Assembly (NCBI GenBank): GCA_010909165.1
Contig: MU008181.1
Coordinates: 372,001 to 436,000 of the forward strand
Direction of reading: 5' to 3'
Source: Anthoceros angustus
Taxonomy: Eukaryota; Plantae; Anthocerotophyta
Length of the DNA: 64,000 nucleotides
Shown here: piece by piece, positions 2,458-51,396 of the stretch
Layout of the letters: every line of letters begins with the position of its first letter
Position numbering within the stretch: the first letter of the stretch is position 1
The notes under the pieces: model-generated
The model's input: only the letters and a program-made list of their open reading frames with translations
The model's database searches: none
Told to the model about the DNA's origin: nothing
Program-made: the position numbers and the translations under genes

Positions 2458-5392
2458 TCAAGGATCATACCCCACCACTTTCAATTTTGAACTTAGGTCT
2501 TTCAGCAATCCATACAGCAGCGATTCTTGCTGGTGCCTGTGGTCGCCCACCATGAAGGTGTGCAACTCTTGGTTGTGCTCGATCCAGCTCTGTCCGGCTT
2601 TTTTCCAAGCACCCTTGCTTTCTCGCAACTCTTCTATCTCCCTTGCACACTCTGACATGCCAGCATGGGCATAAATGTTTGACATGAGCACATAAGATGA
2701 CGCTTGTTCTGGATCTAGGGCAACTGCACGATTGAAGGCATGCCTCCCAAGCACCACATTACTATGTGTACGGCAGGCGCTCAGAATACACAGCCATGCA
2801 GGGAAATCAGGCTGCATTGGCATTTTTAAGATCAAGTCTTCAACCTCTGTGAAGAGGCCGGCGCGGCCTACTAGATCTATGATGCAAACAAAATGCCCGA
2901 GTTCCGCAGTGATTCCATGCTCTGTTGTCATTCGGGCAAAGTACTGTAGCCCCGAGTCCACCATGCAAGCATGACTGCAGGCAGACAGAAGGGCCAGGAA
3001 TGTAACTCTATCGGGCTTCACTCCTGTACAACACATCTCCTCATAACACTGCCCGCATTTTGCAATATCTCCTTGTCGGGCGTACCCAGCAATCAGTGCA
3101 TTCCACGAAACTGGATCAGGTCGAGGCACGGCCTCAAAAACTTTTCGAGCATCCACCATACTCCCACATTTGCCATAAGCATGAATCAGACTGGTTGCTA
3201 CAGAAAGATAGCATTCACATCCCCGATCCACAACGTCCTGGTGGATATTGGTACAAATATCTAAGGCTCCTGTCTTGCTGCAAGCGTCTAGGACGCATAG
3301 GAATGTAGCCTCATTTGGTTCCACACTTTCCTCCTGCATTTGCCCATACATCTGAAGGGCCTTTTCCCCTTGGTCCTGTTGAGCATATGCTGCAACTATG
3401 GCATTCCAAGAGACCACATCTCGGTGGGATAATCCATCGAATATGCGACGTGCATCCTTGATGCTCCCGCACTTTGCAAACATACTAACCAGACTATTAC
3501 CGACGAACACATCTGAGTCAAAACCTCTGGAGGCTGCTTTTTCATATAGTTCTGTTCCCTTTCGCAGCGACCCCACTTTGATTATTTGGCCATGTACCAG
3601 TGAACTTTCTTCTTTGTCTGCAATGCTGCCACATGCTTGCAGAACGCTGACAAAGGTCCGGGAATCTGGCCTGAAACCTTTCTCTTGCATGTGCTCATAC
3701 AGCTCCAAGGCGATTCCACCTTGATCCTGCTGTGCATATGCTGCAATGATTGAATTCCATGACACCACATTGTGTTGTGTCATTCGGTCAAACACCTGCC
3801 TTGCATCCTTTATGCTTCCACACTTCCCATACATGCTCACCACAGTGCTTCCAACAAACACATCCGATTCAAAACCTAGGCGAACAGCTTCTGCATGTAT
3901 CCTACCCCCTTTCCGCAGTGACTCCACTTTGACATTTTGCCCATAAATGAGCGCACTTCTCTCCTTTTCTGCAAGGGCACCACATGCTTGCAGAGTGCTC
4001 ACAAAGGTTCGAGCATTTGGCTTGATTGCCTTCACTTGCATTTCCTCATATATTTGCAATGCACGTTCTCCTTGGTCCTGCTGAGCAAACGCTGCTATCA
4101 AAGCATTCCATGACACTACATCTTGGTGGGGCATCTGACAGCACACCTCTCGTCCATCCTTCAAGCTCCCACACTTCGCATACATGCTGACTAGACTGCT
4201 AGCAACAAACACATCTGAATCGAAACCCAGCCGAGTAGCTTCCGCATGTATTTCACTTCCCTTGCCCAATGACCTGACTTTGACCTGCTCCCCATGCATA
4301 AGAACACTCTCCTCCTTGTCTGCAAGGTTGCTACACGCTTGAAGAGCACTGACAAAAGTCCTACCGTCAGGCGTCACTCCTTCCTTGCGCATGTCAGCAT
4401 AAATCTGCAATGCCCTTTCCCCTTGGCCCCTCTGAGCATAGGCTCCAATCAATGCAGTCCAGGATACGACATTGCGGTGCACCAGTCTGTCGAACACCTG
4501 TTGCGCAATAGTGAGGTCGCCACACTTAGCATAAAAACTAACCAAAGTACTTCCCACAAAGACATCAGACTCAAGCCCATTTCTCAGAACATGAGCATGA
4601 ATCCGCTTGCCCTCTTCTAAGTCTTCTAACTTGCTGCACGCTTTCAGTAAGCCAACAAACGTGTACTTATCAGGTTGTACACCCTCCTGAAGCATGTCCT
4701 GGTAGCACGAGAGAGCCTGTCTACCCTGCCCAGCATTGCTATACCCTGAAATGACTGCTGTCCACGAAAAAACTGTTCTGCACGACAACCTCTCAAACAC
4801 CTGAATCCCATCTGTGATGCTTCCACATTTCACCAGAGTTGCAACCAGAAGCTCACCTAGGAATTTGTTGGCCTCGAACCCATGTTTTGCCATATGTGCA
4901 CGAACTGCTTTAGCTTCAACCAGGGCCTTCTTGTTGGTGCACGCCTCCAATAAGCACTTATACAACTGCACCGAAGGCACCATACCCAGCTCGTCCATGC
5001 CCAGCAGGGTGTCCAGGGCCTTGTCCAGTTGGCCCAACTTGCAGAGCCTTTCAGCCCCACCATAGCTCCTTGACCTGCAAACCCACACAGGATTTCAAGG
5101 CTGCATTAGGATTTCTTCCACGCAGTACAGTACGTGGCAAAACAGTACAGCACAGAATCTTCTGCCCAGCAAGCAATCACCTTCCTTTGTCAAGGACCAA
5201 CCGAGACTCAGACCCTTGACGTCCCTTCACCGATTCATGAAGTTCAGCACCCAGTCGGACTAGCTGCGACTCTGAATCACCCAAGCCCAGGAGCTTCTTC
5301 GAGTTTTGCTGTCTGAACGCAGGAGAGGCAGAGGATCTTTCTGCCTGCGATACAGCACAGCTCGGGCTGAATATCTCCAAGCATTGCTCCAT
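2458..5392 (-). CDS. PLS-class PPR protein with long (LL-type) L motifs, E domains and a truncated E+ end; 2 exons (5392-5181, 5074-2458)
   Basis: 876-aa ORF of PLS triplets ending WKKAGQSWIE...HTFMVGD...GYDP*. An upstream exon from ATG 5392 (MEQCLEIF...DKGR) joins in frame through a GT-AG intron at 5180-5075 (AG|gtgatt...ttgcag|G). Confidence 0.92.
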
Positions 5393-26797: not shown

Positions 26798-29700
26798 TCA
26801 TTTGTCTGCAGCTTTGCCCTCACCCACTGGCTGCGATGAAGGGTCTTCCGGCGGCTGCTCGACCTCCGGCGCGTTCGGGCCGTGTTTGGCTGCAGCCTGG
26901 AGGACCTTCTCCTTCACGGCCGAAGTGGACGGGGTTGTGGCGAGCTGGAGCTTGGGAGGCACAATCCGTGACGCAATCCTGGATACTAACTTGAAGCCTG
27001 CTACGAACGGCAGACTCAGAAATCTGCAGATTGAATGACCAGGAGGAGTGGTGAGGTTGTGGAGATCCTTGATGGGACGAGAAGGGAGGGTAGATGCAAG
27101 TTGCTTGTGGATCACTACCTGAGATCGTTCTTCACGTCTGCGACGCTCCTGTAGCCGTTCAGCTTGTCGAATAGCAACTGGCAGAGACAGACACAACGAC
27201 AGCCTTGTTAACAGATTTTGAGATCCGATTTGTAGCAATGCGTTTAGGACGGCGGGTACCTGGCATACTGCAAGGAAGCCTATGAGTTGCAGTGTTTTCT
27301 CGTACTCTGCACGAAAGACCATTAGAGCTGGTCAGGCATGGAACCCAACTGGCTTCACAATCCAAGAAAGCTGGAGAGGGGTGGATGAGATCTTACGGGA
27401 GATAGCATATACTCCGGCTACAAGACCCTGTAGTGCACAATGTGTCAGTATTCCTGGCATCACTGAAGATGGTGACGATGAACACATGACCATACTTTGG
27501 AACAGGCCACTTACAAGAGCAACTAGAGCTACACCGCCTGTCGTAGGCTTCACTTCCTCCACGATAGCCTCGGTTTCCTGATAGAGCCATTAAGCGAATG
27601 AGCTCGGATGAAGGGAACAATCTGAAGAAAAACCCTGCAGGAGGGAGAGACTTACTTCCTTGAGGATAGCGATAGGGGTCAGTGGTCCTTCTCCCTTGAT
27701 GGGAAGTCCTGCCCTAACCCAAGCCTTGAACCCACCTTCGATACGGTATTGTTTCTGTGCAACAATGCAGGCGAGTAGGATCAGGTACAACCCATCAGGA
27801 TCAGAATCAGCGATCAGCTCAGACTGGCGAATAAGGACATGGTAGTGGCATCGTACTTGAACACCCAATTTTCTCAAGGTCTTCGCCAAGTCTTTTGTTC
27901 GACGGCCGTCTGCATCTAGCAGGATCAACTTCGAGTTTGGCTGCACATGTGCGAAGCACGGGGTTAGCCAGAATCAGTCACCAGCGGAGCACACAGATGA
28001 GCAAGCACCTGCTTGATCATGATAAGACCTACATTCACGATCTTCAGATTTCGAATGACTGCTGCAGTGACAACGTTGTCGATGTCCCGTGGGCTCCTCA
28101 CTAGCTTTCGCACTGCGGAGCTCACCTGCACATCGGCAGGCATCCTTTGTGTCACACCGATGTGAAATCCATACAGTGAGCAAGAAATCAAACAACTTCT
28201 TGAAATTTGTTTTGTTCACCTTGATAATCTCCACATTCCCGTCCTTAAAACGAGCTCCTCTCCGCAAGTCAAGAATACCCTCAGCGTCCCTGACCTCCTA
28301 CAATGACGAAGAGCAGCAGTGGACGTCCTCACCCATATCCGTATATTTTGGCATGGAACATCAGAAGAAACCAAAGAGCTAGCACCAAGAATCACAGTCT
28401 TCATATACCTGAGACCGAATGTCTATCAAGGCCACATTACGCTCCTTCTTCAGTAATTCCAATGCTGTGCTTGGATCCAGGTCTCCCGAGTAACCACCGT
28501 ACCGCTGAATCCACCATGAGATTCTGCAACGGACGTGATGCATCGTTACCAACATAGCTTGTCGGCATAGTACAATTCACCAGTTGTGAACTTTGCAGAG
28601 CTCCCATGGAACAGCTGGCATGAAGCTTCAGGCATACCCAATATACACCACGGGTATTCCCACAGCAATTGAGGGAACGATAGGATTGTCGACGTCTATA
28701 CCCACTGTCTTAACCACCCGCAGCACAATCTCAAATCCCTGCAAAGATGCAAACCCAAGATCTGCCTTTAAGACACACCTGCTCCACCACCACAGTGCAA
28801 GCAGCAAAATTTGAAGATGCCTGAGGGAAGGCGGAGTACCTGTCCAACAGAGGAGACCACAGGTTTCGAGTACTCTGAAATGGTGCCCTCAATATTGCTC
28901 AAGGCATCCTGGGTCTCCTGTGGAAGGCCTCCCTTTGTGGAGCTGTAAACGTCCACGACATATCCCTCAGCGGTGACCAACGCAGCACCCAAATTGTCCT
29001 TCACACCATCGACTACTACTTTCAGAGCATTATTGGCAGAAGTACCAGGGTAGAATACACCGAACGTATCCAACAGTTTCTGCTGAGTAGCAGCCGTTGT
29101 GTTATCGACGGATGTTTGGATGTCCAGACGCACATTGTCTGCTGCACCCGTGACCGAGCTCACTGCATTCTGTATCGACCCCGTCACACCGTCGGCTACG
29201 TCCTGCACAGCCTGCTCAACGTCCCTAACTCTCTCCTGAAAGAAGTTCTGAGCACTGTTGATGGCATCCTGCACAGGATTCCCCGACCCAAAACCGGAGC
29301 TACTCTGCACTACTGCCTCTGCACCACTCTGATCAACCCCAACCCCGGTTTGAGCTGCTTCCTCAGCACCCTGGTCATTGCCCACACCACCGTTATCAAA
29401 CGGCTCCGTGATACCATCAATGGCATCCTGGAAAAACTTCTGCACACTGGCAACCGATTTGGCCACAGCATCCTGAACACCAGAGATTGCATCGTTTATG
29501 GTCCCGAGTGGGTCATAATTCCCTCCGTTCCGGTCGCTCTCGCCCGATCCAGACCCTCTCACAAGCTCATTGTAGTCCAGCTCCACACGACGGGGCTTCT
29601 CCACAAAGAGAGCGTCCGACCCACCTCCAAACCCGTCACCCTGACTGCCAGCATCGGTCACAGACTCCCCGCCCACAATGCCATCAGCAGCCGGCTGACC

Positions 29701-30984
29701 CACACCATCGGTCACAGACTCCCCGCCCACAATCCCATCAGCAGCCGGCTGACCCACGCCGTCGGTCACAGACTCCTCGCCTACAATGCCGTCAGACGCA
29801 GGCTGAGAATCCACAACAGTGTCGCCGACAGATTGTCCTGCATAGGCTCCTCCTTCTCCACTGTCCCCATCGCCCACAGATTCCCCTCCATAACCTCCAC
29901 CTCCTTCTCCACTCTCTCCAGCTTCCGAAGAATCCCCTGCATATACCCCGGCGCCCTCTCCACTATCTCCAGCCTCTGCAGCAACACCTTCAGCATCAGA
30001 AGCAGGCTGAGAATCCACAACAGTGTCGTCGACAGATAGTCCTGCATCGCCTCCGCCTCCTTCTCCACTTTCCCCAACGTCCACAGATTCCCCTCCATAA
30101 CCTTCACCTCCTTCTCCACTCTCTCCAGCTTCCGCAGAATCCCCTGCATATCCCCCGGCGCCCTCTCCACTATCTCCAGCCTCTCCAGCAACACCTTCAG
30201 CATCAGAAGCAGGCTGAGAATCCACAACAGTGTCGTCGACAGATAGTCCTGCATAGCCTCCGCCTCCTTCTCCACTTTCCCCAACGTCCACAGATTCCCC
30301 TCCATAACCTTCACCTCCTTCTCCACTCTCTCCAGCTTCCGCGGAATCCCCTGCATATCCCCCGGCGCCCCCTCCACTACCTCCAGCCTCTCCAGCAACA
30401 CCTCCAGCATCAGAAGCAGGTTGAGACTCCACAAACGAGTCGTCGACCGATTGTCCTGCATAGCCGCCACCTCCTTCTCCACTTTCCTCAACGTCCACAG
30501 ATTCCCCTCCATAACCTCCCCCTCCTTCTCCACTCTCTCCAGCTTCCGCAGACTCCCCTACATAGCCCTCCACTCCCTCTCCACTCCCTCCAGCGTCCTC
30601 ACTCTCTCCCAGTTCCACAGATTCTTCCTCTGCAACAAAAGAAGCATCCTCACTCTCCAGTTTCTCGCTCTCCTCCGCGCGCACAGGCTGAATTCCCCCA
30701 TACCGTGTGAGCGAGTGCACAGCTTCATGCATTCCGCCCCAGGCATTGCCCAGCCTCCTGGCAGCCGTGGCCCCGGCCTGCTGAGACACGGCGGCGTCTG
30801 CCAGGGCCTGTACGGACGTGACGCCGAGCCCCCCATAGGCAGCAACAACAATTCTCCTCCTCCTCAGCCTGCGATCCCCGGCCCTCAGATTCCGCAACAA
30901 TTTCACATCTCTGCGGCCGCAGGCGAAGCAGGGCGATCCTCCCAGCACCTGGGCAGAATGCTGCTGCAGCAGCGCTTCCCACAT
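26798..30984 (-). CDS. CAS-like plastid rhodanese-domain membrane protein (At3g59780-type) with an expanded acidic Gly-rich N-terminal repeat region, multi-exon
   Basis: ATG 30984 (MWEALLQQH), Arg-rich transit-like stretch, G/E/S/D repeats, then GIPDLRRGARF-like (GILDLRRGARFK), IRNLKIV, LILLDADG, RIEGGFKAWVRAGL (rhodanese), a TM segment and EKTLQLIG. Confidence 0.82.
29645..30560 (-). repeat. coding tandem repeats: about 3.5 x 207 bp (69 aa) plus about 3 x 54 bp (18 aa)
   Basis: cagcatcagaagcagg at 29991, 30198 and 30405 (period 207); DGIVG(E/G)ESVTD(GVGQPAA) three times. Confidence 0.93.
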
Positions 30985-31679
30985 GTCTGCGAAACCGACT
31001 CGGCTCAGGGCAGAGCAGGGCTGGGCCGCAGCAGCCGCCGCCGCCTCCTCCTCCTCACCAGGCGCAGCAGCATACCATAACGGCAAATTCAGCAACCCAT
31101 TGCTGCAATCCCAGCACCCGGAGGCAGGGCAGTGGGAGCCAGAAAGATGGGCTCCGGAAGGACGCTCAGTAGCCCGGTGCCGATTGCCCCGACGAACAAT
31201 CTTGGCCCCCCGTGCGAAAGCCGAAGGCAAGGCCCGAGGCCGAGCTCCCCTGGTCCAGGTGCGCACAAGTGGGCAGGAAGGCCATGCTTCAAATGTGCGT
31301 TTCCTGCCGTCGTGAAGTCGTGGGAGAGTCCGTGGAACCGGAGTAGTAAAACTAGGGACAGGATGCGAGCTCCGCAAGGTCCGATTGTGGTTGGCCCAGC
31401 TTGTGGCCCACTCATCTCCTCCCGGCAATTGGCAGCCAGAAATTTCCCACCACCAAATTCACCAGTTACTGCATCCGAGATCGGAGTTGTGGGAACTTTC
31501 AAAGCTGCCTGCACTGACAGGAACCACCACGTCATGCTGCGAGAGATGATGGGCGGACATAACAGGACGCAGGATGGGCCACGCTGCAAGCTGCGTTGCC
31601 CGATGCTCAAAGTGGGACCGTTTATTAGCGGGCTGTTAGGCGGGCTAATCTGACTTTGTGGGCGCTGCTTTGATCCACG

Positions 31680-34600
31680 ATGCTTGCAGGCGGCGGGACT
31701 GGGCTGCGTGCAGGGGATGGATTGAGGGCGCTGAGATGGGCGGGGAAGGGAGGTGGGTGGAAGAGCAGGGTGCTGTCGGGAAGGGGAAGGCTTGTGGGAG
31801 CAGCTCTGGCTGCGGAGCATGGGCCGAGGCAGGAAGGGAGGGTTGGTTTGGATGTGTCTCTGTTGCCCAAGCGGAAGGCAGAGGCCTACGTGATGCAGGA
31901 GGCTCCCAAGAGGTACCGGAAGAGATGGAAGAAGAAGGCACGTCTGGAGTGCAGTCCGTTGGAGATAGTGGAGCAGGTGCTGAGGATGAACCACTGGGAG
32001 GATATTGATGGGCTGTTGAATCGATGGATGGGGAGGTTCAATCGGAAGAACTTTCCTGCGCTCGTGCGGGTGGGGATGGATGGATGGATGCTTTGGTGGA
32101 ATTGTGTTTTGTGGATTTTGCATGGTGGTGTGAGGTTGTGACGGGGAGTATATGGTGGCAGGAAATGACAAGACGTGGGTCTCTGCCACACTGCCTGCGG
32201 GTGTTCAACTGGATGAAAGTGCAGCAGAATTATCGAGCTAGGAATGATATCTACAATGAGATGATATGGCTCTACTCCAGGCATCAGCAGGTGGATCAAG
32301 CACGGGGGCTGTTTAACGAGATGCAGGAGTGGCGGTCAGTGTTTCCATCCCCCCGGTGTTTTGTTTGCTGCCTGGGAAAAGCTTGTGCTGTGTCAGAGTT
32401 GATGGTGCTTGGTTTTCGCACTCTGAGCAAGAGGATGTAGCAGATGCAAGCCTGACGTTGAGACATACAACGCTTTGATCAATGTGCATGGGCGGGCTGG
32501 GCAGTGGCGGTGGTCGCTGAATATGTTCGAGGACATGCTGCGGGCTGGAGTAAGTCAAACATTCTAGAATGCACTGCCTCTCCCAGTGGTTGCCTGGGGT
32601 GAAGAGAGACTGAGGCACTTCTCGCGCAGGTACCACCGAATAGAAGCTCCTATAACAACGTGATCAACGCATGTGGCACTAGTGGGCAATGGGAGGTGGC
32701 TCTGGATGTTTGCAAGAGGATGTCGAGTCAGGGTGTGGGTCCTGATATTTTCACGCACAACATCATCTTATCAGCATTCAAGAGTGGCTCTCAATATCGC
32801 AAGGTGCTGGCGTATTTCGAGCACATGAAAAGCTGCAAGCTTGTTCATCCAGACCGGGTTTCTTACAACATTGTTCTTCACTGCCTCATCAAGATGGAAG
32901 AGTTCGACAAGGCTGAAGGCCTTTTCCATGTGATGAAGAGCATGAAGTCGAGTCCATGCTACCCGGATATTGTGACATACAACAATCTCATGCACTTGTT
33001 CTCCGTGCAAGGACAAGTCACAGATGCAAGGGCCATTTTTGAGATGATGGTCGGGGAGGGTCTGAAACCCACCATAGTCTCATTCAACACTCTGATTGGT
33101 GCATATGGATCACTTGGACTGCATGCTGAGGCGCAGGAGATGTTCACTTTGCTGACTCAGAGTGAACTATCACCGGATGTAGTATCATATTCTGCACTTC
33201 TGAATGCGTTTGGCAAATCAGAGCAGCCAAAAAAAGCTCGGGAAGTCTTTGAGACTATGAAAAATAGGGCAGTAAAGCCCAATGTGTGCACCTTCAACTC
33301 TTTGATCGACGCCATTGGTTCTTCTGAACCTTTTCCAGCCGTCTTTTCGCTCTTGCATGATATGGAAGCCATGAGAATACAGCCGAATGTTGTGACTATC
33401 TGTAGTCTGATTGCTGCTGCTAGACGCAGTGGGTTTCCAGAGCAAGTGGGAACTGTTCTTCGGGAAGCCACCAGACGGGGGATCAAGCTGAACGTTTGTG
33501 CCTACAATGCTGCAATTGCTGCAGATTTGGACACAGGTGCACGTAATTTGGCAATTACGAAGTACGGGGAAATGAAAACTGCTGGGGTGGATCCAGACAG
33601 AGTCACATTCACCACTTTGATTGAAGGACTTGGTAAACTAGGAGACTTGTCTGAAGCCCAGAAGCTGTACGAAGAAATGTTACAACTCAAGATACCAAGG
33701 ACGGTGCAGGTGTGCACGGCACTGACTGATGCTTATGCCAAACAGGTAATTGTCTGAGACAATGCCCGCATGCTGGCTGTTTGCTTTGAGCCTCCACCCA
33801 CTACGTGAGCTGAGCCTACCCATTGCAGGGCCTGCATCACGAGGCAAGAAGAGTCTTTGATGAAATGGAGGCCCACGGCTGCAAGCCTAACGTCATCACT
33901 TATACGTCACTGATCCATTGCTACTTATTAGCAGGTGCCTCTGCCCCTCACGTTGAACCAAGCCGTTCTCCGTCATAGAGGGAGAGCATCCAGAGTCCTG
34001 GTCTGCTATCACTCTACGCCATTCTTCTGCAAAATGAGCTGATTGTCTCCTCATCTTCGTGGTTACAGGCATGCCAGAAGCTGCAAACCTTGTCTTCAGA
34101 AAGATGGACGATGCGGGAATTGCAGCAGATGAACAAGCTTGTGTTACCATATTTGCTGTGCAGAACAAGTGTGGACAGCCTGAACACGCCTTGCGCTTGT
34201 GGGAAGAAGTGAAAAGCAAGGGTGTAGTCTTAAGAGAAGCAGCGTACAAGGAGCTATTTGTGGCCTGTCACAAGTAATCACTCACGGTTGATGCGCGCTG
34301 TCATTGAGAATATCACATCATCCTCCCTAGAAAAGCCCATGTTCTGACCAGTGGCTCTTGCATCCAGGCTGCTAGATTGGAGATCTGCAAGTAGACTATT
34401 ACAAGACATGCTAGACTCAGGGATCCACCCTACTCTCGGTGTCTCGCACTACTTACTAGGCACTCTAGGGAAGAGTGGCAAACTCGATGTCTTGCTCAAG
34501 GTACTGACAAACTCCTTTGTGCTTAAAAGTTTGATGTTACATCTTCGCTTACTGTCCATCATACGCTGTGTTTCCAGGCATTCCACCAGCTGCAAAGAGC

Positions 34601-36308: not shown

Positions 36309-39300
36309 TCAGCAGTGCTCGTATTTCCGTTCAACCTTGTCCTGCTCCATGCACTCATCACAAATCCAGATGTAAGGTGAATTTGGCTGACCGCGAACTC
36401 TTGCCCTCCTTAAACTAAAATCCTTTTCTACATCGGACTCGGCCAAGAACTTGGTCTTCCAACCATACTCCGGATTTTGAGCAAGGAACTCTTCCAGTCT
36501 GCTCCTGAGCGTGTCACCGGACATGTCTACAGCCTCTTCACCTTCAAGCAACTCTTCAACTGCACGTGCACAGTGGACAGTCCGATTTAAGGCCGGAACA
36601 CTTGTGATAACACTTCCTGCCAAACCTGCTCCTGGAACAGGGGCATGCTGCAATCCAATTTGTGCTGCTAGGCACACATACAAGTACAGTCGTGAAGTCC
36701 AGGGTTGGAACCTCATTGCACGTTTATCCATCAAATAAAACATACGCCCTCGTTGAGATGCTACTTTGTGAGTTGGTCCGTCATGTTGATGACTACCATT
36801 CCCACCACACTCACACTCGACATGAAGTCGCAGAGGAATTGCTCTGCCATAGTACAGTCCAGATATGAACTTTCGCCACAAGCCCACATTATGAGTGAGA
36901 TAAACAGGGCCGTGGGGAATGTTTTCAATCGATGGATTCCAAGGACATTCTGGCCGTGCATCAAGTACCCTCTGCCGATCATCATCTAGCAAGACAATAT
37001 CTCCTTGGACAAGTGTTGCATACCCTGAACTACGACCCAGGGGGGGATCTGATCCGTCAACAGCTTGCCAGTGGTGGATGTAGATATTATCCGGACACCT
37101 AGGAATTTGGTCTATCAACTTACTTATCAAAACTGAAGTGTCCCCTGTCCTATACTTGCACAAAGTTAAGGATCTCACGCACTCTTTCCTTATAAGACCT
37201 TCCACAAGAGACACCCCTATGCAGCCTTGTTGAGAAGCACAAAATTGTCGAACCTTTGTTATCAAATGGTCCTGCACAAATCTCATAACTTGGCTATAGT
37301 CTCTCTCCGACCTTACCAACACATCAACAAAGTATCCCACCTGTGCGCTGTATTCCATTATGATTTCGTGACCAACTCCGTCAATCGAGATGTGGAACAT
37401 ATTAACATCCAATACCTTAGTCCACCAAAGATGCTCCCGTGTTACCCATCCTTCAGATACACACATGTCATAGAGAATGATCTACACAGGAAATGAAGAG
37501 TTATTATCCATATATTCATTCATAAAAAATAATTAAACTAATAAATATATATTTATTACCTGTAAACGAGGAAAAAATCCTGGGGTTAAAAATGTGCGCT
37601 TTGTGTCTGAACACTGCAATCGAACCCCAACATATGTATCAGTCCTGCTAGTATCCCTCCACTCCAATTTCCGTTCACCTGCGTCATTGATTCCTCCCAT
37701 CAAAACTGGGATGAGATAATATTCTTCGTTATTGTTGGCGACATGCTCATAACAAAGATTGAATTTCTTCATCAATTGAAATAGCATTCTTATACTAATT
37801 GTTGATGTAACAATATCCTCGTTTGCTTTTATCCGAATAATAGAGTTCTCCAAAAGCTTCGCTAGCTCTTTTATATGTACTATTCCATTCGTCGGCTTGA
37901 AAACGGGCTCATTTTCAGCTTCGCATAGGAATGGATTCATTAAGTACCCAAATATGGCATGACTAAACCAATGAGGATCAATCACCATAAAATCCAGGTC
38001 TTCGAAGTAAATAATAGCCCCACTATCTCGTAGATATGCTGCTACGACTTTCCAGCTACTCTCATGTATCATAGCTACTTGCAATGTTCTCTTATCCAGT
38101 ACATCCATCCTATGCAATTCTACTTCATATGCTGCTTGCACAAGGTGATGAAATGTATCCGTAGTCATAATTGGATTCCCTCCTGCCTCCCTTGCCCACC
38201 GCCGTAAATTTAACAACGTAAGCTCACAAATTGTTGGCACTTCTTCCAACACTAAAAACAAGTGCCTGAACTTTGTTTCAATAATACTAAGTAGACGTTC
38301 TACCTCCTCAGGATCCAAAGCATTGAGAAGGAAGATGGAGTTAACCTCAACTTGTACAAGATTTTGAAACTTGTCCGCCAGCAATTCCACAATACGCCTC
38401 ACATCGAAGGAGTTCAATTTTGTTGCTGCCTCATCTTGGTGTGTAACCACTACGATAACCTTGGGCTTGATAGCATATTCAGACCTAGAATTAGAACAAA
38501 TAAAACGAAGCCAATATTCGAGCTGGCGACGAAAATGTAAAATCCTGGTAATATTTATATCATCCTGCAGAGGCTTATAAACAAACAAGAAAATGGTAGA
38601 ACCATTTGTGTCAGGGAACACGCAATCGTGAAGTGCATAATATTCCTCTTGTCCAGCGAAGTCCCACACCGAAATTCTCAAATCTTCATCCTCCATCAAC
38701 ATGACGACTTCAATTCCTCGAGTGCGTGGCCTTTTCCTTTCCCCTCCCGCGTTGCGAACCGGGAATTCGGAGATACTAGTTTCACCTGCTTCATGGGAAC
38801 CGGCCAGATGTTGTTGCTTGAGATTGCGCATGGTGTCCACCAATGTGCTTTTACCTGCAGGGCATCACATTATGGCAGCATTGGTAAGGACGGTGATAAG
38901 GAGGAAGAAGCAATGCACAAAGTGCTCACAACTATGGGAAAACATGGCCAAGGAAGAAGGGTTAACGTTCTTGCCAGCAAAAGGATATCCGCATAGCACT
39001 AGGCGACCTGATTTGGCACGCATTTTTGGCACCCCTCCAAGAGACGCTCGGTACTCCACATTTCTCCTTATCGCCTCCGAGAGAGCTGGCCCTTTCCCTG
39101 CCTGTTCCAATGGTGTTCCTTTCACATCGATGGTCCGGATCGAAGTATTAGCGAGTAAGAGGTCTGTAAGAGCTTTGTACACAAGTTCCTCATCCACGCC
39201 CTCACAGTCTTCAAGGCTGAGTGTTTGAAGAGTGGTGTTCGAGGCCAGTGCAGGCAGAATTGTAACCCAGTGCGTCTTGGAGTAATAAGCTTTCCGGAGA

Positions 39301-40655
39301 TGAAGCTCCACGAGAGACGTATTGAGAGCGAGCATACTGTGCAAGTCCTGCGCATCCCCGGTGCAGTAGGGTATGGACAGCTCGCGCAGCTGGGATAGCC
39401 CGACGGTGGCATTAGATTGAGCAGAATCCGGGCCCGGGGTGAGCTGTTTGAACAAAGCTGTTGCGCCTGCGCGATCCAGTCGGATGGACAGCTTCTCCAG
39501 GCGCAATCCGTGGTTTAGAGACATGGCCTCAATGACGGCCGTCTTGTAGAATACCAGAAAGAAATTTGTGCCTTCGAAGCCATAGTGCAGGGATTTGAGT
39601 GCAGTATTGCACCGCAGCATCTCCGCCACTTTCTCGCCGAACGATGAAGACAGACTCGGAAGCATCTGACACTGTGTTGGCGTCCAGCGCGTTGGATCTT
39701 CTGCAACGGTTCTGTATTTTACCAAGTCCGACGCTGAGCACTTGTCATTGCGCCCCATGGCCTTCGCCCTTCCGTGAACGAACAGTTTCTCCAGCTTGGT
39801 TGCAGCTTGGTTTTGGAGAAGGGCCTCCGCTGTCACCAATATCACTTTTGCCATCAGCGTCAATCTTGGTGACAAATCTCTCACTGTGAGGGAGGTGAGA
39901 GTGGAAGCAGGATCGGCGAGCAACGGGCCCAAGAGCTGACGAATCTCTTCAACATCCCTGCCCCCATTCAAGTTGAGCCGGAGATCTCTGACAGCAGAAA
40001 ACTTGGTAATGGTGGCCGCCAGGTCCCCGCCTATCCTCGCGATGCCGTCATTGTACCCTTCCCAGATCAGCAAGGTCCGCAGGGTGGCATTGCCCCTCAT
40101 GGATTTCGAGAAAGCTTCCCACCACGCGTGTGCTTCTACCCGGCCTCCCGCGGGCTCCTCGAGGAAGACTCGGAGCTCCTGGAGGGAGGCGTTGGTGTTA
40201 AGACACCGGCCCAGCTGAGCAGCTAACCCTGCTGTCCCAAACATTTCACCCGTCAGCGTCAACTGAACCACGACCGACCTGCTGGAGGCCAGAGCATGGA
40301 AAAATGCTTCCAGCTCCTTTCCCTCCCAAAGCCGCTGATGTTGGAAGACCATTTTGAGCTTTGGACGAGAAAGGGCGAGCAGGGAAAGCGCCACTCCCAA
40401 GGAAGACGGCGCACGCACATTCACCTTCTCACACAGGGTCTCAGCCAAGCTCCGAACTCTAGTATAGTCCTGATCGCCTGGAGTATTGTCGGGAACAGCC
40501 ATGTTCAGTGCGTGGTCGAGCCAATCCGGTCTGGGATCCAGGTCCAAGAGTGTCTGTGCAGTCTCAACCATATCCACAGGGCCAGGGAACCCAGGGGGAT
40601 GGATTCGTTCCGCGGCTTTGGCTGATTTCCAACGCGCCATGAAAGCCATGAGCAT
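36309..40655 (-). CDS. TORNADO1-like LRR (ribonuclease-inhibitor type)-Roc-COR protein; 3 exons (40655-38975, 38854-37560, 37481-36309), about 1380 aa
   Basis: RI-like LRRs (LNTNASLQEL, LASNTTLQTLSLEDC), P-loop GYPFAG|KST, TRGI, WDFAGQEEYYALHD, VVVTH, COR motifs (IDPHWF, FLTPGFFPRLQ), C-terminal LHVECE...H and LRRARV...WICDEC. Both introns keep the frame; the true N-terminus is uncertain. Confidence 0.85.
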
Positions 40656-41267
40656 TGGCAATGCGTGCAACCCTGGGACTTGATTATGCGAAAATCACAA
40701 AACTCTGGTACAAGACAACCAGATACGTGATTAGGTCTGCACCATGGATACTGGCAATGTAACACCAAGTGCGGTGTGCAGCAAGCATCTTTCAGTGAGA
40801 GCCAGACACACATGGATGCATCACGAGTCAGGACTTCTAAGAACTTGAGCATGAATCGAAAATCACAAAAGTCTGGTTCAGTACAACCAGTCTGGACCAT
40901 CTCGAGCAACATAGCACCGGCACCTCAGAACAGCAACAATGCGCACAGCTTCAGGGGAAGAACTGGTACTGCTTGTGCATAGGCAGGAGGGAGAGAGAGC
41001 ACACTTGAAGGAAGTCCTATGATGCCACCCTTTGCGGATCCGGAGCTCACCTCACAATTCACAAGAAAAAAATATTCAGGCAGCGCCGGAATTCAGGCCT
41101 TCCCTTGGAAGAACGTCAGCAATTCTAGGCTCCGCAAGGACCGTGAAGTGGAGGCCTCCAGTAAGGACCTGTCTCTGGTCCCGAAAGTATATCCTTTAAT
41201 TTGAAGCTTCTTGTGAGGATGGGATAGCGTTGCGCGGACTTCCACAGCTGTATACCACTAGCCCGTC

Positions 41268-48300: not shown

Positions 48301-49914
48301 GCTATGTGCTGAGGACTGATCTGTGCAATGGTTATGATTTCAGTGCGTACAATTTTTGGACCATTTGTGAAGCTTCCAGAGCCCTGCCAGCTGCTCGCAG
48401 TAGATGCCCTTTATTACTACAAGTCTTTCTCTCCACCGTTTCTTAAAGCTATAGCACAATGCTGTCTCAGTAAGTTTCTTTGTGACAGTGCTGCTTTATC
48501 ACAGTCTCTTCAGATGCCACCATTGGCATCTGTGCTTACGTTTACTAGTGCAGGCCTTGATGTCAATGTGACGATCGTCATGCGTGCGGTGGAAGTTCTT
48601 CAAAGATCGTTTTGCAGAGGTGCCATTAGTCTGGCAGATCACTTGAGTTTTCTGGTGACCTTGCTTGTGGGGCACACATCAGACAGAGGTAAGCTTGCTC
48701 ACAGGTTCAATGGAGTTGTTGCAGATTGTGGGAGAGTCACAGCTTGTCTGTGGAACTTGTCATTTGGTGGCAAGTTTGGTCCGGTTGCGCATTCTTTGCA
48801 TCTGTTAGTTTACTTGTGGATTGCTAAACAATATGCTCAATGATCACCTGGCTTGATTACAGATCGAACGGATATAGAGAAGGGTGTTCCCAGAGGTCAT
48901 GATCTTGCAACTGTGCAGCTGACAGGAAACTATGCAGAGAGGAGGCAATGCCTAATCGGAGGGGTTATTTGTGCTTGTTTAAAGCAACTGGGGGATGATA
49001 ACCTAATTCTGCTGCTGCTCGGCCCAATATTGCGTCAAGAACTTGTATGCCTTCAGTGCACCTCTGAAGCTTGAACCTGACGGTCGGAATATCTTCACTG
49101 TGCTGGTTAACATGGTCTAGGTACTTGGTATGCAGGAAGCGGCACCACCGTTGGATGTTGTGCATGGCCTTCTAAGGACAATCGGCGTGCTGAGCCATGG
49201 TGGTAACAGGCTACCACCAGTATTAGCCGACGTGCTTCCAACACACGTTTCCAACTTCACCAAAAGCGTATTTGAGGTAGATGACACCTGAATTATGCCT
49301 TATGCGTGGATGTTAGGCTTGACGAATGTTTGCTTGATCAATTCCATGTTTTGGAAACAGGTTGATGGCGGGGATGGAGTCATGGACTTCCTCTTTCGTC
49401 CATGTGTGGTGTTGCTATCTAAAAACTCCGGTCTAGCTCAAGGGGTGCTGGAGAAGTTTTTTTCTTCGTTGAAGGAAGGTGCGTCACATTATCTTTCGGC
49501 ATGTAGGTTTTGTCGAAAATCTCTTCGTCGTCCTTCTACAGCATATTTGCCCTATTTCCGCTTGTGCAGCGTCGGGATCATCAAATTTTGTGAGGTTGTC
49601 GACAAGGGTTCTCCACGCTACAGTAAGGTTTCTGAAGGAGGAAAAGCTAGCTAGTAGTTTTTCTGTGTGCGAGTCCACGGTGAAGGCTGTTCTGCACTTG
49701 TTCAAGGTACTCATGGGGAGAGCAATTCTCTGCTGCCGGCTTGATGAATTGGGTGTGCTTCTTACAGTCTCTGCGCTTCCTTGTGCAGGAAAGTAATAAG
49801 TCTGCTTCAAACGAGCAAGTCCCACAAGCAAATAAATTATATCTGCAGCTTGAGAATGTAGCTAGTAGACTATACGGTTGGAAGCCTGAAGAGGTGTATG
49901 TCACTGTACAGTAA
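45369..49914 (+). CDS. IPI1: TEX10/IPI1 (Rix1 complex) ARM-repeat pre-60S biogenesis protein, multi-exon
   Basis: MPSGK...GVDFK|KVKHKVGRKLPPPKNET...AIVLPEQSL...TLKELL.Q..HYS.RVRK, LEKLCPRITDGDRAVRQ; C-terminal exon ends YVTVQ* at 49914. Confidence 0.88.
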
Positions 49915-50025: not shown

Positions 50026-51069
50026 CTACCTCAGTTCCTGACCTTGCCCATAGAATGTCCAGAGGCTGTGATCGTCGCCGACAAACCTCCAGTGCCACGG
50101 CTCATACGCTATCCCTTGCGAGTTGTCAGCGGGGAAGGACATCTCGAAGTGAAATCTACCAGCATGCCTTTCCAACCACGCGAAGGCGGTTGTCTGCTGG
50201 AATTCGAACTCCACGTCGGCGGAAGGGCAATCCCGATCCCCGATATCCAGAGCATAGCCAGTGTGGTGCTCGCTGAAGCCAGGCGGAGCAGACACCCTGG
50301 CCCTCTCGCTGGCTCTTTGCACTCTGGCCGCCTTCACATCGTAGAACAACGTCTGCTGCTGCTGGACAGACCGAAACCCCGAGATAGGCACAAGTCTGAC
50401 CCCGTCCCGGTACGCCGCCTCCTGCATGAGGAAAAAGGCCTTAGCAGCCGACCTCCGCATCCTGACGCTCCCGTCAGCCAGCACGGGCACCAGCTCGCTC
50501 TCGGGAGCCTCCGCCATTCTCCGGTGCCCTAGTAACCTCTCCAGCCGCGACTCCGTTTGCACCTGCACCGCAGGCTGCAGCACACTAGCCGCCACCGTCC
50601 CGGCGTCCGCCGACCTCATGCTCCCCGACTTCAAGGAAACCGCCATAGCCAGAGCTGCCACAGCATAGATGGCGCCTCCCATCCATGGCGGAGCGGCCAC
50701 CCGGCGCCTGGCGTCCTTGAGCAGAGCCGACGGCTGCCTTACGGCCTGCGGCTTCTCGGGCGGATGGTCCGAGCTCTGGTCTGGCACAGCGGCAGGCCAT
50801 GTGAGAAGCTCGATCTTTTGCTCGATCTGCTCCAAGGTTCCCGCCGCCTCCGGCACCACCTTGGCTCTCTCCCGCAGGCTCTTGAGACGTTGCTCCAGAT
50901 GCTCCACGCTTGGGGCTTGGATGCGTCGCCTCGGGTGCTGGTGGCCTCGCCCGCTCGTCACCCTGAGCTTGAATTCAGATGCCGGTTTCCTTCTTGGAGG
51001 CGGTTGCCTGCGCAGCTGAATCGCGCATCCATGGCAGTGCTGTTGGTAGAACACGACACATTGCTGCAT
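50026..51069 (-). CDS. VanY-like D-Ala-D-Ala carboxypeptidase (peptidase M15B), cyanobacterial type, with transit-peptide-like N-terminus, coiled coil and one TM helix; no intron in the coding region
   Basis: SGFRS...QQ.LF, SAPPGFSEHHTGYALDIGD (SxHxxGxAxD), AFAWL..HA.RFHFEMSFP..N.QGIAYEPWHWRF (ExxH); LLGH...EAP..ELV lead-in; hydrophobic MGGAIYAVAALAMAVSL. First in-frame ATG is at 51069. Confidence 0.92.
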   Translation of the reverse strand: MQQCVVFYQQHCHGCAIQLRRQPPPRRKPASEFKLRVTSGRGHQHPRRRIQAPSVEHLEQRLKSLRERAKVVPEAAGTLEQIEQKIELLTWPAAVPDQSSDHPPEKPQAVRQPSALLKDARRRVAAPPWMGGAIYAVAALAMAVSLKSGSMRSADAGTVAASVLQPAVQVQTESRLERLLGHRRMAEAPESELVPVLADGSVRMRRSAAKAFFLMQEAAYRDGVRLVPISGFRSVQQQQTLFYDVKAARVQRASERARVSAPPGFSEHHTGYALDIGDRDCPSADVEFEFQQTTAFAWLERHAGRFHFEMSFPADNSQGIAYEPWHWRFVGDDHSLWTFYGQGQELR

Positions 51070-51396
51070 GATGCTCCCAGTAAAGAGTGCACGAACCACC
51101 TGCAGAGTCAGGAGCAGACGCGTTACAGCTCACGGCTTCATATCCACTCACAACTCTCACATCGCGAAGTGCAACGGAGAGCCACCGATGGTGTATGTAC
51201 GCCGACGGTTTCCCTCTTACAATACACGTCACTTCACAGCTACCCTGTGTATCTATGTAAATGGCCAGACTTCCGGTCATCCCGTGTACCAGGCGTAAAC
51301 CAGCCTCAAATCTTCCAAAATTGACAATGCCTCTAAGGTTCAGTTGGTGCCAAAACAGTCTAGGTCAAAGCGTACATCTTCACCTCCACTCCTAAC

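Follow-up and report, generated by a model that had tools for sequence, protein, structure and literature searches.

A gene on the minus strand of contig MU008181.1 of the hornwort Anthoceros angustus, within the 64,000-nucleotide stretch analysed here (the window), encodes a VanY/M15B-type zinc peptidase with a membrane anchor. We consider it probable that this is a functional nuclear gene for a membrane-anchored M15B carboxypeptidase of plastid peptidoglycan (PG), which came through the primary plastid endosymbiosis and works by the mechanism described below, and trimming of the thin PG layer around the chloroplast is its most likely role. The earlier note had described a nuclear, cyanobacterial-type M15B/VanY peptidase, and the intact active site, the N-terminal extension and the membrane anchor were all supported by our analysis.

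The open reading frame listing of the window contained a single uninterrupted frame of 347 codons, initiated by ATG, at 50026-51069 of the minus strand; the listed frame itself was 50026..51099, with 357 amino acids counted from a GTG. In the alignment with L001, an orthologous transcript contig, the first ATG of the window frame, at 51069 (MQQCVV...), stood opposite the earliest in-frame ATG, and therefore the coding sequence (CDS) was taken as 50026-51069. The ten codons upstream of this ATG are probably not translated. The location given before (50026-51100) needs two corrections: the strand is minus, and the eukaryotic CDS begins at the ATG instead of the GTG. The frame is uninterrupted as claimed, and the listing, the Pfam match and the motifs together place it far beyond chance. 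The CDS was read without a spliced model or stop read-through, and residue numbers refer to the 347-residue protein. The features are listed in Table 1.

Table 1. Positions of the VanY-type gene and its features in the window
Feature	Position	Strand	Remark
Complete single-exon CDS, VanY/M15B-type carboxypeptidase	50026..51069	-	347 codons plus stop (50026-50028); L001 colinear over full length
Ten codons from listed GTG to first ATG	51070..51099	-	Probably 5' UTR; L001 has no in-frame ATG upstream of its aligned MHCC start
Residues 1-54, basic, Pro-rich, acid-poor, disordered presequence-like region	50908..51069	-	Candidate transit peptide
Residues 55-90, two amphipathic heptad helices with PEAAG between	50800..50907	-	Short coiled coil or helical hairpin
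Residues 91-127, Pro-rich linker ending in basic cluster KDARRRVAAPPW	50689..50799	-	N-terminal side of membrane helix
Residues 128-148, single predicted transmembrane (TM) helix	50626..50688	-	Signal-anchor or stop-transfer type
Residues 176-347, catalytic VanY/M15B (LAS-fold) zinc peptidase domain	50029..50544	-	Includes conserved LLGH lead-in
Pfam VanY match	50074-50463	-	Within catalytic domain
Arg233, SGFRS motif	50371..50373	-	Equivalent of SpLdcB Arg120; nearly invariant in 82-sequence alignment
S266-E-H268-H-T-G-Y-A-L-D275	50245..50274	-	Predicted zinc ligands His268 and Asp275 (H-x6-D)
E323-P-W-H326	50092..50103	-	Predicted catalytic Glu and third zinc ligand His

The C-terminal part of about 170 residues was a complete VanY/M15B domain, as had been proposed. 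Pfam VanY (PF02557) matched with E=1.7e-42 and 144.7 bits (cut-off 25) over profile positions 3-132 of 132, and all the motifs quoted before were present (GFR(233)S, S266-E-H268-H-T-G-Y-A-L-D275 and Y-E323-P-W-H326-W), with every zinc and catalytic residue. The zinc-binding motif of the family is H-X(3-6)-D...H, and its conserved Arg (Arg120 in SpLdcB) straddles the nucleophilic water (PMC4087270). In an alignment of 82 homologues, S266, H268 and D275 were invariant, as were E323, P324, W325 and H326. The EPWH motif aligned with that of BaLdcB and BsLdcB, and Glu323 and Arg233 with the corresponding LdcB residues. The AF2 model had a pLDDT of 84-99 in the blocks over residues 181-340 and above 95 in most of the domain. 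Foldseek returned a probability of 1.00 to LdcB, VanY-B, VanXYc and VanXYg, and most of these chains had TM-scores, normalised to the target, of 0.57-0.69; the best matches were BaLdcB 4mph (E=1.7e-11) and VanY-B 5hnm (E=2.4e-10). Profile match, zinc motif, Glu and Arg, and fold were all as expected for a member of PF02557/MEROPS M15B, the LAS-fold zinc D-Ala carboxypeptidases. At this level, His268, Asp275 and His326 are predicted to bind zinc, and Glu323 and Arg233 to complete the active site.

The protein had also been called a D,D-carboxypeptidase. The assignment as an M15B zinc peptidase stood, whereas the D,D label was an assumption, with LdcB proteins as the closest solved relatives and NCBIfam scores below every cut-off. 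It is possible, if on the doubtful side, that the same protein at the same location is an LdcB-like L,D-carboxypeptidase, which would convert tetrapeptide stems to tripeptides by removing D-Ala; LdcB activity and its active-site residues are described in PMC4087270. Among PDB sequences, the lowest E-value was that of B. anthracis LdcB (4mph/4jid, 7e-20), followed by B. subtilis LdcB/YodJ (4ox3, 3e-16), while VanXYg (2e-12) and VanY-B (1e-11) came behind both. Foldseek placed the same LdcB structures first, at 29-33% identity compared with 25-27% for VanY. However, the fold E-values of LdcB and VanY-B were only about tenfold apart, and the S. pneumoniae LdcB structures ranked far below VanY by both sequence and fold. 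The NCBIfam LdcB/DacB model (NF041194) scored 49.6 bits against a cut-off of 275, less than vanXY (63.4) and vanY (55.7), and none of these reached its cut-off; the VanY/VanXY models NF000472, NF000473, NF000380 and NF000149 gave 39.9-63.4 bits against cut-offs of 250-500. Low-molecular-weight PBPs are not known in plants, and a PG pathway whose only PBP is of class A would otherwise have no D,D-carboxypeptidase. Because of this context, the D,D reaction, from pentapeptide to tetrapeptide, would be favoured over the L,D reaction.

The N-terminal part agreed in most respects with the earlier description. An Arg/Pro-rich, acid-poor N-terminus was confirmed (11 R/K, 6 P and 1 D/E in residues 1-54), with a pLDDT of 41-47; only 4 of these 54 residues are Ser or Thr, which is atypical for many transit peptides. 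The heptads quoted as a short coiled coil were modelled as helices at 55-69 and 73-90 with a block-mean pLDDT of about 71-85. Their 4-3-4-3 spacing (L58/L62/L65/A69/V72 and L79/I82/I86/L89) was read from the sequence, and they are conserved in the nearest relative, P0001. A pre-TM motif, APPW/QPPW/APSW, is common to the window protein, P0001, Klebsormidium and Physcomitrium. The claimed TM helix was modelled at 130-148; the best 19-residue Kyte-Doolittle mean was 1.56 at 128-146, a modest hydrophobicity, and the charge around it was asymmetric (KDARRR before, KSGSMRSAD after).

Every homologue examined, whether from streptophytes, other Archaeplastida or cyanobacteria, had a hydrophobic helix at the equivalent position. 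This helix starts at residue 26-51 in cyanobacterial homologues, compared with 84-224 in Archaeplastida and 128 in the window protein. The presequence-like region was missing from the cyanobacterial homologues, whereas every archaeplastid homologue examined had an N-terminal extension; such an extension relative to the bacterial proteins is compatible with a transit peptide. The proposal of a plant-added N-terminal module therefore held for the roughly 90-130 residues before the anchor and failed for the TM helix, which is already in cyanobacterial homologues. The anchor is a cyanobacterial one conserved into plants, and the additions are confined to the presequence-like region and the helices. 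Pfam gave no domain match to the N-terminal part. A search with the N-terminal 172 residues alone returned nothing at E<=10, a weak negative, since it also missed P0001, which matches pairwise by BLASTP at E=9e-24.

With 127 residues before it, the internal TM helix could serve as a signal anchor, and the N-terminus is poor in Ser and Thr. The protein would then be a type II protein of the secretory pathway or plasma membrane, with its extracellular domain directed against the walls of symbiotic or pathogenic bacteria. We regard this location as unlikely, because orthologues occur in free-living unicellular algae and in a glaucophyte with a peptidoglycan-walled plastid, N-terminal extensions occur throughout the archaeplastid family and are missing in the bacterial proteins, and a cyanobacterial ancestry suits retention with the organelle.

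The family to which the gene belongs is already known. Orthologues were found in Physcomitrium ('uncharacterized protein', P0005), Ceratodon (P0006), Sphagnum (P0003), Klebsormidium ('Peptidase M15B and M15C', P0004), Mesotaenium (P0122) and Closterium (P0002). Homologues in Chloropicon and Pycnococcus are annotated as 'D-alanyl-D-alanine carboxypeptidase', and the Cyanophora homologue vanY (P0198) appears in the gene list of PMC6704402. With orthologues in mosses, streptophyte algae, prasinophytes and Cyanophora, some of them carrying the D-Ala-D-Ala carboxypeptidase annotation, novelty is lower than first stated: the window gene is a new member of a known plant family, and it will be no surprise to specialists. 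The exact window protein was not on record in public assemblies, and the protein search gave none identical to it. In the literature searched on plant VanY/Dac and plastid PG, we found no published functional test, only the Cyanophora gene list, and the literature on cyanobacterial orthologues yielded no characterised one. A moss 'Dac' is reportedly the subject of work by Machida et al. in PNAS in 2006.

Among named proteins, the VanY-type gene occurs in lineages reported to have the PG toolkit, namely mosses, hornworts, Klebsormidium, Chloropicon and Cyanophora. Hornworts have all ten PG-synthesis enzymes according to PMC8964177, and Chloropicon and Micromonas, whose sequences fall in or near the VanY-type family, likely have a plastid PG layer according to PMC10784329. 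In large protein searches, none of the named orthologues came from a liverwort, lycophyte, fern or seed plant. Since Marchantia has the ten-enzyme synthesis toolkit and these searches showed no liverwort orthologue, the enzyme does not seem to be obligatorily coupled to plastid PG.

A retained relic with a changed, non-peptidoglycan role would also suit this pattern, since liverworts and vascular plants that still have the synthesis toolkit apparently lack the enzyme, which suggests that enzyme and pathway are separable; a changed role has been proposed for MurE in seed plants. Such a relic is improbable, however, as the zinc and catalytic residues are all invariant, purifying selection on the domain is strong, and the identified lineages that keep the enzyme are reported or suspected to keep plastid PG. 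Compared with L001, dN/dS was 0.28 over the whole CDS, 0.32 in the heptad-helix region (residues 55-90) and 0.145 in the VanY domain, while residues 1-54 evolve fast (pN 0.55). The gene therefore evolves under purifying selection, and orthologue transcripts exist in the L001 species and in Physcomitrium.

The origin of the gene was addressed with a careful maximum likelihood tree. The window protein, mosses, Klebsormidium and zygnematophytes formed one streptophyte clade with a support of 99/90, in which the window protein paired with P0001 (100/99). All identified Archaeplastida, including Cyanophora, Prasinococcus, Pyramimonas, Pycnococcus, Chloropicon and Myrmecia, were in one clade that also held the streptophytes and was less firmly supported than the streptophyte clade (82/87). 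This clade, Gloeomargarita and crown cyanobacteria formed a polytomy. Among bacteria, the 80 best matches were all cyanobacterial, from many orders. Deep nodes were only moderately supported, a smaller quick tree had an unstable deep backbone, and a partial eukaryote-like protein, P0275, could not be placed firmly. Of the two origins previously considered, endosymbiotic transfer and later transfer from symbiotic Nostoc, the deep streptophyte clade points to the former.

A recent horizontal transfer into a single plant lineage, with symbiotic Nostoc or some other cyanobacterium as the donor, would fit an intronless CDS and a protein 45-62% identical to cyanobacterial homologues, yet it is very improbable and was rejected by tree, AU test and GC content. 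The window protein lies inside the streptophyte clade, far from the Nostocales clade (100/97), and constraining it and P0001 to group with Nostocales was rejected by the AU test (delta lnL 54.2, p=0.0025). The gene has a GC of 0.62 and a GC3 of 0.74, unlike the 0.45-0.49 GC of Nostocales homologues, and it has the APPW pre-TM motif and the N-terminal extension in common with other streptophytes. With a dS of about 1.1 to the nearest orthologue, the gene is old within its own lineage. The Sphagnum and Klebsormidium genes have eight introns each, whereas the window gene has none, and at least six intron positions within the domain are common to these two genes, showing a long nuclear residence of the VanY-type family. 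The window gene appears to be an orthologue of the moss, Klebsormidium and zygnematophyte VanY-type genes that has lost all eight ancestral introns. By these sequence comparisons, it was inherited from the cyanobacterial plastid ancestor and is shared with mosses and many algae; a recent gift from Nostoc it is not.

The VanY-type gene is a land-plant nuclear gene with multi-exon eukaryotic genes on either side. A UCH/UBA/zf-UBP gene ends 328 bp upstream of it and a TEX10-like gene lies downstream; the window also contains PLS-class PPR genes with E motifs, and the MGS-domain neighbour known beside the Klebsormidium and Closterium genes was absent from the window. The view that the locus is a bacterial contaminant in the assembly, or else a pseudogene in decay, has the bacterial-type domain as its sole point in favour and can practically be dismissed, given these neighbours on the same contig, the intact reading frame, the domain dN/dS and the grouping with plant sequences in the tree.

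For the preferred plastid carboxypeptidase, we infer targeting, envelope topology and beta-lactam insensitivity from the sequence. The basic, acid-poor N-terminus would act as a plastid transit peptide, and the TM helix would arrest in or insert into the inner envelope membrane with its N-terminal side in the stroma, a topology suggested by the positive-inside rule and by the cyanobacterial topology. This would put the heptad helices on the stromal side and the catalytic domain into the intermembrane space, the site of plastid PG, where it would cleave the C-terminal D-Ala off stem peptides regardless of beta-lactams. Either the D,D reaction or the alternative L,D reaction (tetrapeptide to tripeptide) would restrict the cross-link donors for the plastid PBP, and so shape the PG layer used in plastid division. 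More tentatively, and in our view rather unlikely, the lineage-specific stromal helices may make the enzyme a transmembrane coupler, and/or the enzyme may be an L,D-carboxypeptidase. The former would link PG trimming between the envelope membranes to a partner in the stroma, such as the FtsZ/ARC6 division machinery, and the latter would mean that plastid PG is matured to tripeptide stems, neither of which belongs to the current ten-enzyme model of plastid PG.

Surveys of plastid PG list ten synthesis enzymes, and land plants seemingly lack other wall genes thought necessary, according to PMC10784329. The VanY-type family would be a PG-remodelling enzyme outside this list, and we found no other candidate of such kind in the plastid-PG literature searched. 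The family traces to the plastid ancestor and is intact and under selection in bryophyte-grade plants and many algae. The gene would give a direct, beta-lactam-independent handle on whether plastid PG is actively matured, and could reveal how the cross-linking state of the wall contributes to plastid division. Useful evolutionary markers are the loss of every intron in the window gene and the seeming lack of the family in liverworts and vascular plants.

Several known systems can be compared with the window protein. The serine D,D-carboxypeptidases PBP5/DacA have the same role as proposed here, pentapeptide trimming and cross-link control, but their fold and mechanism are unrelated (acyl-serine, penicillin-sensitive), and Pfam found no such domain in the window protein. 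VanY and VanXY of the vancomycin-resistance clusters are in the same Pfam family with the same LAS fold, and remove terminal D-Ala by beta-lactam-insensitive zinc chemistry; they are 25-28% identical to the window protein, whose gene lacks a resistance-operon context. The Firmicutes LdcB proteins (BaLdcB 4MPH, BsLdcB/YodJ 4OX3 and SpLdcB 4OX5) are the closest solved structures by sequence and fold and have the zinc ligands H-x6-D...H, the Glu of ExxH and the Arg in common with the window protein. Their identity is only 29-33%, however, and organism, anchor and PG chemotype differ, the mDAP type being expected in plastids.

The cyanobacterial membrane-anchored proteins annotated as 'M15 family metallopeptidase / D-alanyl-D-alanine carboxypeptidase family protein' (e.g. 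Gloeomargarita P0071, Geitlerinema P0012 and Nostoc sp. MS1 P0065) have a catalytic domain 45-62% identical to that of the window protein, with the same LLGH lead-in and the same single N-terminal TM anchor, which leaves the catalytic domain on the outer side. They are 235-310 residues long and run from a short cytoplasmic N-terminus, with a D-[DE]-[IV]-P-x-A-x-R motif, through a basic patch, TM helix and linker to the VanY domain, but lack the presequence-like region and the heptad helices. The neighbourhoods of 80 cyanobacterial homologues contained permease, malic enzyme and phosphoribosyltransferase genes, with no cell-wall cluster and no functional hint. In the archaeplastid VanY-type proteins, the two-helix heptad module is not clearly present outside the window protein and P0001, whereas the architecture of N-terminal extension, TM helix, linker and VanY domain is the same as in the window protein and the domains are 53-62% identical to its own.

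The VanY gene in the window is real, intact, nuclear and selectively maintained. The earlier note had placed it on the correct ORF; its strand is minus and its start most likely an ATG. Counted from GTG, this ORF (50026..51099) encodes 357 amino acids. The first ATG, at 51069 (MQQCVV...), gives a protein of 347 amino acids and is most likely the translation start. The protein matched the Pfam VanY family PF02557 with E=1.7e-42 and 144.7 bits (cut-off 25), covering profile positions 3 to 132 of 132. The motifs SGFR233S, S266-E-H268-H-T-G-Y-A-L-D275 and Y-E323-P-W-H326-W were each found. S266, H268, D275, E323, P324, W325 and H326 were invariant, and R233 nearly invariant, in an alignment of 82 sequences that took in plants, algae and cyanobacteria as well as more distant bacteria. 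The catalytic domain had pLDDT values of 84-99 in an AlphaFold2 model built on the same alignment. The ORF, the Pfam match, the motifs, the helices and the TM helix all agree with the M15B description made from the sequence alone.

The top match was P0001, the nearest orthologous protein, with 54% identity over 96% of the window protein length; neither this search nor an exact look-up gave an identical protein. It is encoded by a public 1.58-kb contig, L001, which has an uninterrupted ORF and Illumina adapter sequence at 1-23, and which we take to be a transcript. The window ATG aligns with the first in-frame ATG of L001. P0001 as called starts 28 codons before that ATG, at a GTG, so the public record probably extends its N-terminus too far. 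Homology between the two proteins is clear in their N-terminal halves as well (BLASTP E=9e-24), where it takes in the heptad helices and the APPW-plus-TM segment. In the codon comparison with L001, dS was about 1.1 and the first 54 codons were essentially saturated, while dN/dS was 0.145 for the catalytic domain, 0.32 for the helices and 0.43 for the TM segment. These values indicate that the gene is functional and that the helices are under constraint. The GC3 of the VanY gene exceeds that of every neighbouring coding ORF measured in the window (0.40-0.65), and L001 has a comparably high GC content; high expression or biased gene conversion could be the reason.

After P0001, the matches were from Closterium, Sphagnum, Klebsormidium, Physcomitrium and Ceratodon, with Mesotaenium contributed by a profile search; hundreds of cyanobacterial proteins came next. 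The catalytic domain by itself, used in an exhaustive HMMER search free of any length limit, returned 12,519 relatives, Klebsormidium and Mesotaenium ranking at the top. Cluster look-ups of neighbouring representatives yielded Cyanophora paradoxa, Prasinococcus, Pyramimonas, Pycnococcus/Pseudoscourfieldia, Chloropicon primus and Myrmecia bisecta. Among 185,579 bacterial and archaeal species genomes there were 593 relatives, the best 80 of which were all cyanobacteria from many orders. In the three large searches (the one that gave P0001, the profile search and the HMMER search), which did not reach plant genomes directly, liverworts, lycophytes, ferns and seed plants were not represented by any named orthologue; this suggests patchy retention of the family across plants. 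Several orthologues already carry the database annotation D-Ala-D-Ala carboxypeptidase or peptidase M15B. The window gene is orthologous to a VanY-type gene that occurs across Archaeplastida, descends from cyanobacteria and has been neglected. The Klebsormidium gene adjoins a minus-strand gene with MGS_GT/MGS_C domains (PF21969/PF21967; 9813-12604 of locus L084), and a Closterium gene model of 745 amino acids (P0121) fuses VanY to these domains. An old linkage may lie behind this association, or else a merged gene model; the window itself has no homologue of the MGS gene.

The first 54 residues include 11 Arg/Lys, 6 Pro and a single acidic residue, and are disordered in the model (pLDDT 41-47). 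Two modelled helices follow at 55-69 and 73-90, with a hydrophobic spacing of 4-3-4-3, and a further helix at 130-148 coincides with the 19-residue stretch of highest hydrophobicity (Kyte-Doolittle 1.56). Cyanobacterial homologues of 235-310 amino acids begin with a short cytoplasmic N-terminus and a basic patch; one TM helix comes next, and a linker joins it to the VanY domain. Since they already have a TM helix before the VanY domain, the anchor is ancestral, and the proposal of a plant-added N-terminal module holds for the extension before the anchor but not for the anchor itself. The TM helix starts at residue 26-51 in cyanobacteria versus 84-224 in archaeplastid proteins, and the eukaryotic addition is sequence N-terminal of the anchor. 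In the window protein this addition comprises a presequence-like region and two heptad helices, and only here and in P0001 can the complete module of two helices be clearly seen. A conserved cytoplasmic motif, D-[DE]-[IV]-P-x-A-x-R, lies directly before the basic patch and TM helix of the cyanobacterial homologues and is missing from the plant proteins. The basic cluster KDARRR sits N-terminal of the TM helix in the window protein. The positive-inside rule and the analogy with the bacterial proteins would together place the N-terminal part in the stroma and the catalytic domain in the intermembrane space, the site of plastid peptidoglycan. Plastid import is what we infer for this protein, and the product is most probably a plastid-envelope peptidoglycan stem-peptide carboxypeptidase.

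An IQ-TREE tree was built from 94 sequences and 180 columns under LG+C20+F+G4. The window protein paired with P0001 at 100/99, and all nine streptophyte sequences formed a single clade (99/90), which supports the endosymbiotic origin raised in the earlier note. All identified archaeplastid sequences fell in one clade of 30 rows (82/87), in a polytomy with Gloeomargarita and the crown-cyanobacterial clade; this node is moderately supported and was absent from a smaller quick tree. A single origin at primary endosymbiosis is the best reading, though not proven; streptophyte monophyly and exclusion from Nostocales are firm. Later transfer from symbiotic Nostoc, the other origin considered, is rejected. 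Nostocales formed a tight clade (100/97) deep within the crown cyanobacteria, and constraining the window protein and P0001 to it cost 54.2 log-likelihood units (AU p=0.0025). Composition points in the same direction as the tree, the VanY CDS having GC 0.62 and GC3 0.74 versus 0.45-0.49 for Nostocales homologues.

Gene structure gave independent support on the origin. The Sphagnum (L085, 2001-7383) and Klebsormidium (L084, 4001-8604) orthologues have nine exons each, and six introns in the part coding for the catalytic domain share their positions to within one residue, at about residues 178, 200, 231, 259, 288 and 305 of the window protein. An intron-rich nuclear VanY gene was thus already present in the streptophyte ancestor. 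The window CDS lacks any intron, a complete, retrogene-like loss.

The window is land-plant nuclear DNA, and also carries an eIF2B-epsilon exon. Bacterial contamination is ruled out by the multi-exon eukaryotic neighbours, the ubiquitin-specific protease and the TEX10-like gene. The former, USP5/UBP14-like by its domain set, is the immediate upstream gene on the same strand, ending only 328 bp from the VanY ATG; this leaves room for no more than a very compact VanY 5' UTR and promoter, unless they overlap the 3' UTR of this neighbour. The TEX10-like gene converges on the VanY 3' end. The Roc-COR ORF and its flanking ORFs (36309-40670) may belong together as a single large gene of the ROCO type, or may represent a mobile element.

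Features of the window around the VanY gene
Feature	Position	Strand	Remarks
PPR ORF, intronless	4-1884	+	PLS-class with E motifs, organelle RNA-editing type
PPR ORF, intronless	2458-5088	-	PLS-class with E motifs, organelle RNA-editing type
GC-rich region (about 0.60)	28768-32189	-	886-aa and 366-aa ORFs, no Pfam match; overlapped by several long antisense ORFs
PPR ORF, intronless	32660-33757	+	PPR repeats only matched
Long ORF	36309-37466	-	no Pfam match
Roc-COR GTPase ORF	37533-38843	-	GC 0.41
Long ORF	38865-40670	-	no Pfam match
TEX10/IPI1-like TPR exon	48328-48843	+	downstream of VanY
Ubiquitin-specific protease, multi-exon	51397 to about 55025	-	UCH, two UBA and zf-UBP in separate ORF pieces

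Machida et al. (2006) reportedly included a moss gene for a D,D-carboxypeptidase, 'Dac', in their list of peptidoglycan genes. The literature on plant VanY/Dac and cyanobacterial homologues yielded no functional study of a plant or cyanobacterial family member. Surveys of plastid peptidoglycan treat ten synthesis enzymes and leave the VanY family unmentioned (PMC10784329 among them). All ten are reported for hornworts (PMC8964177), and among the papers examined vanY is listed only in the Cyanophora genome paper (PMC6704402).

The modelled fold and active site are of the LAS-family VanY/LdcB type, a group containing both D,D- and L,D-carboxypeptidases (PMC4087270). No score of the window protein came near the cut-off of the NCBIfam VanY, VanXY or LdcB models, so that it is a PF02557/M15B member outside all characterised subfamilies. 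The evidence supports terminal D-Ala release from stem peptides as the chemistry, with either the penta- or the tetrapeptide as the possible substrate, so that the D,D activity named in the earlier note is a candidate specificity. Insensitivity to beta-lactams is expected, as is established for the metallopeptidase mechanism. The nearest solved proteins by sequence were the LdcB enzymes of B. anthracis (E=7e-20) and B. subtilis (3e-16), with VanXYg and VanY-B less close. By fold, the two LdcB structures again led (E=1.7e-11), and VanY-B was close behind (2.4e-10).
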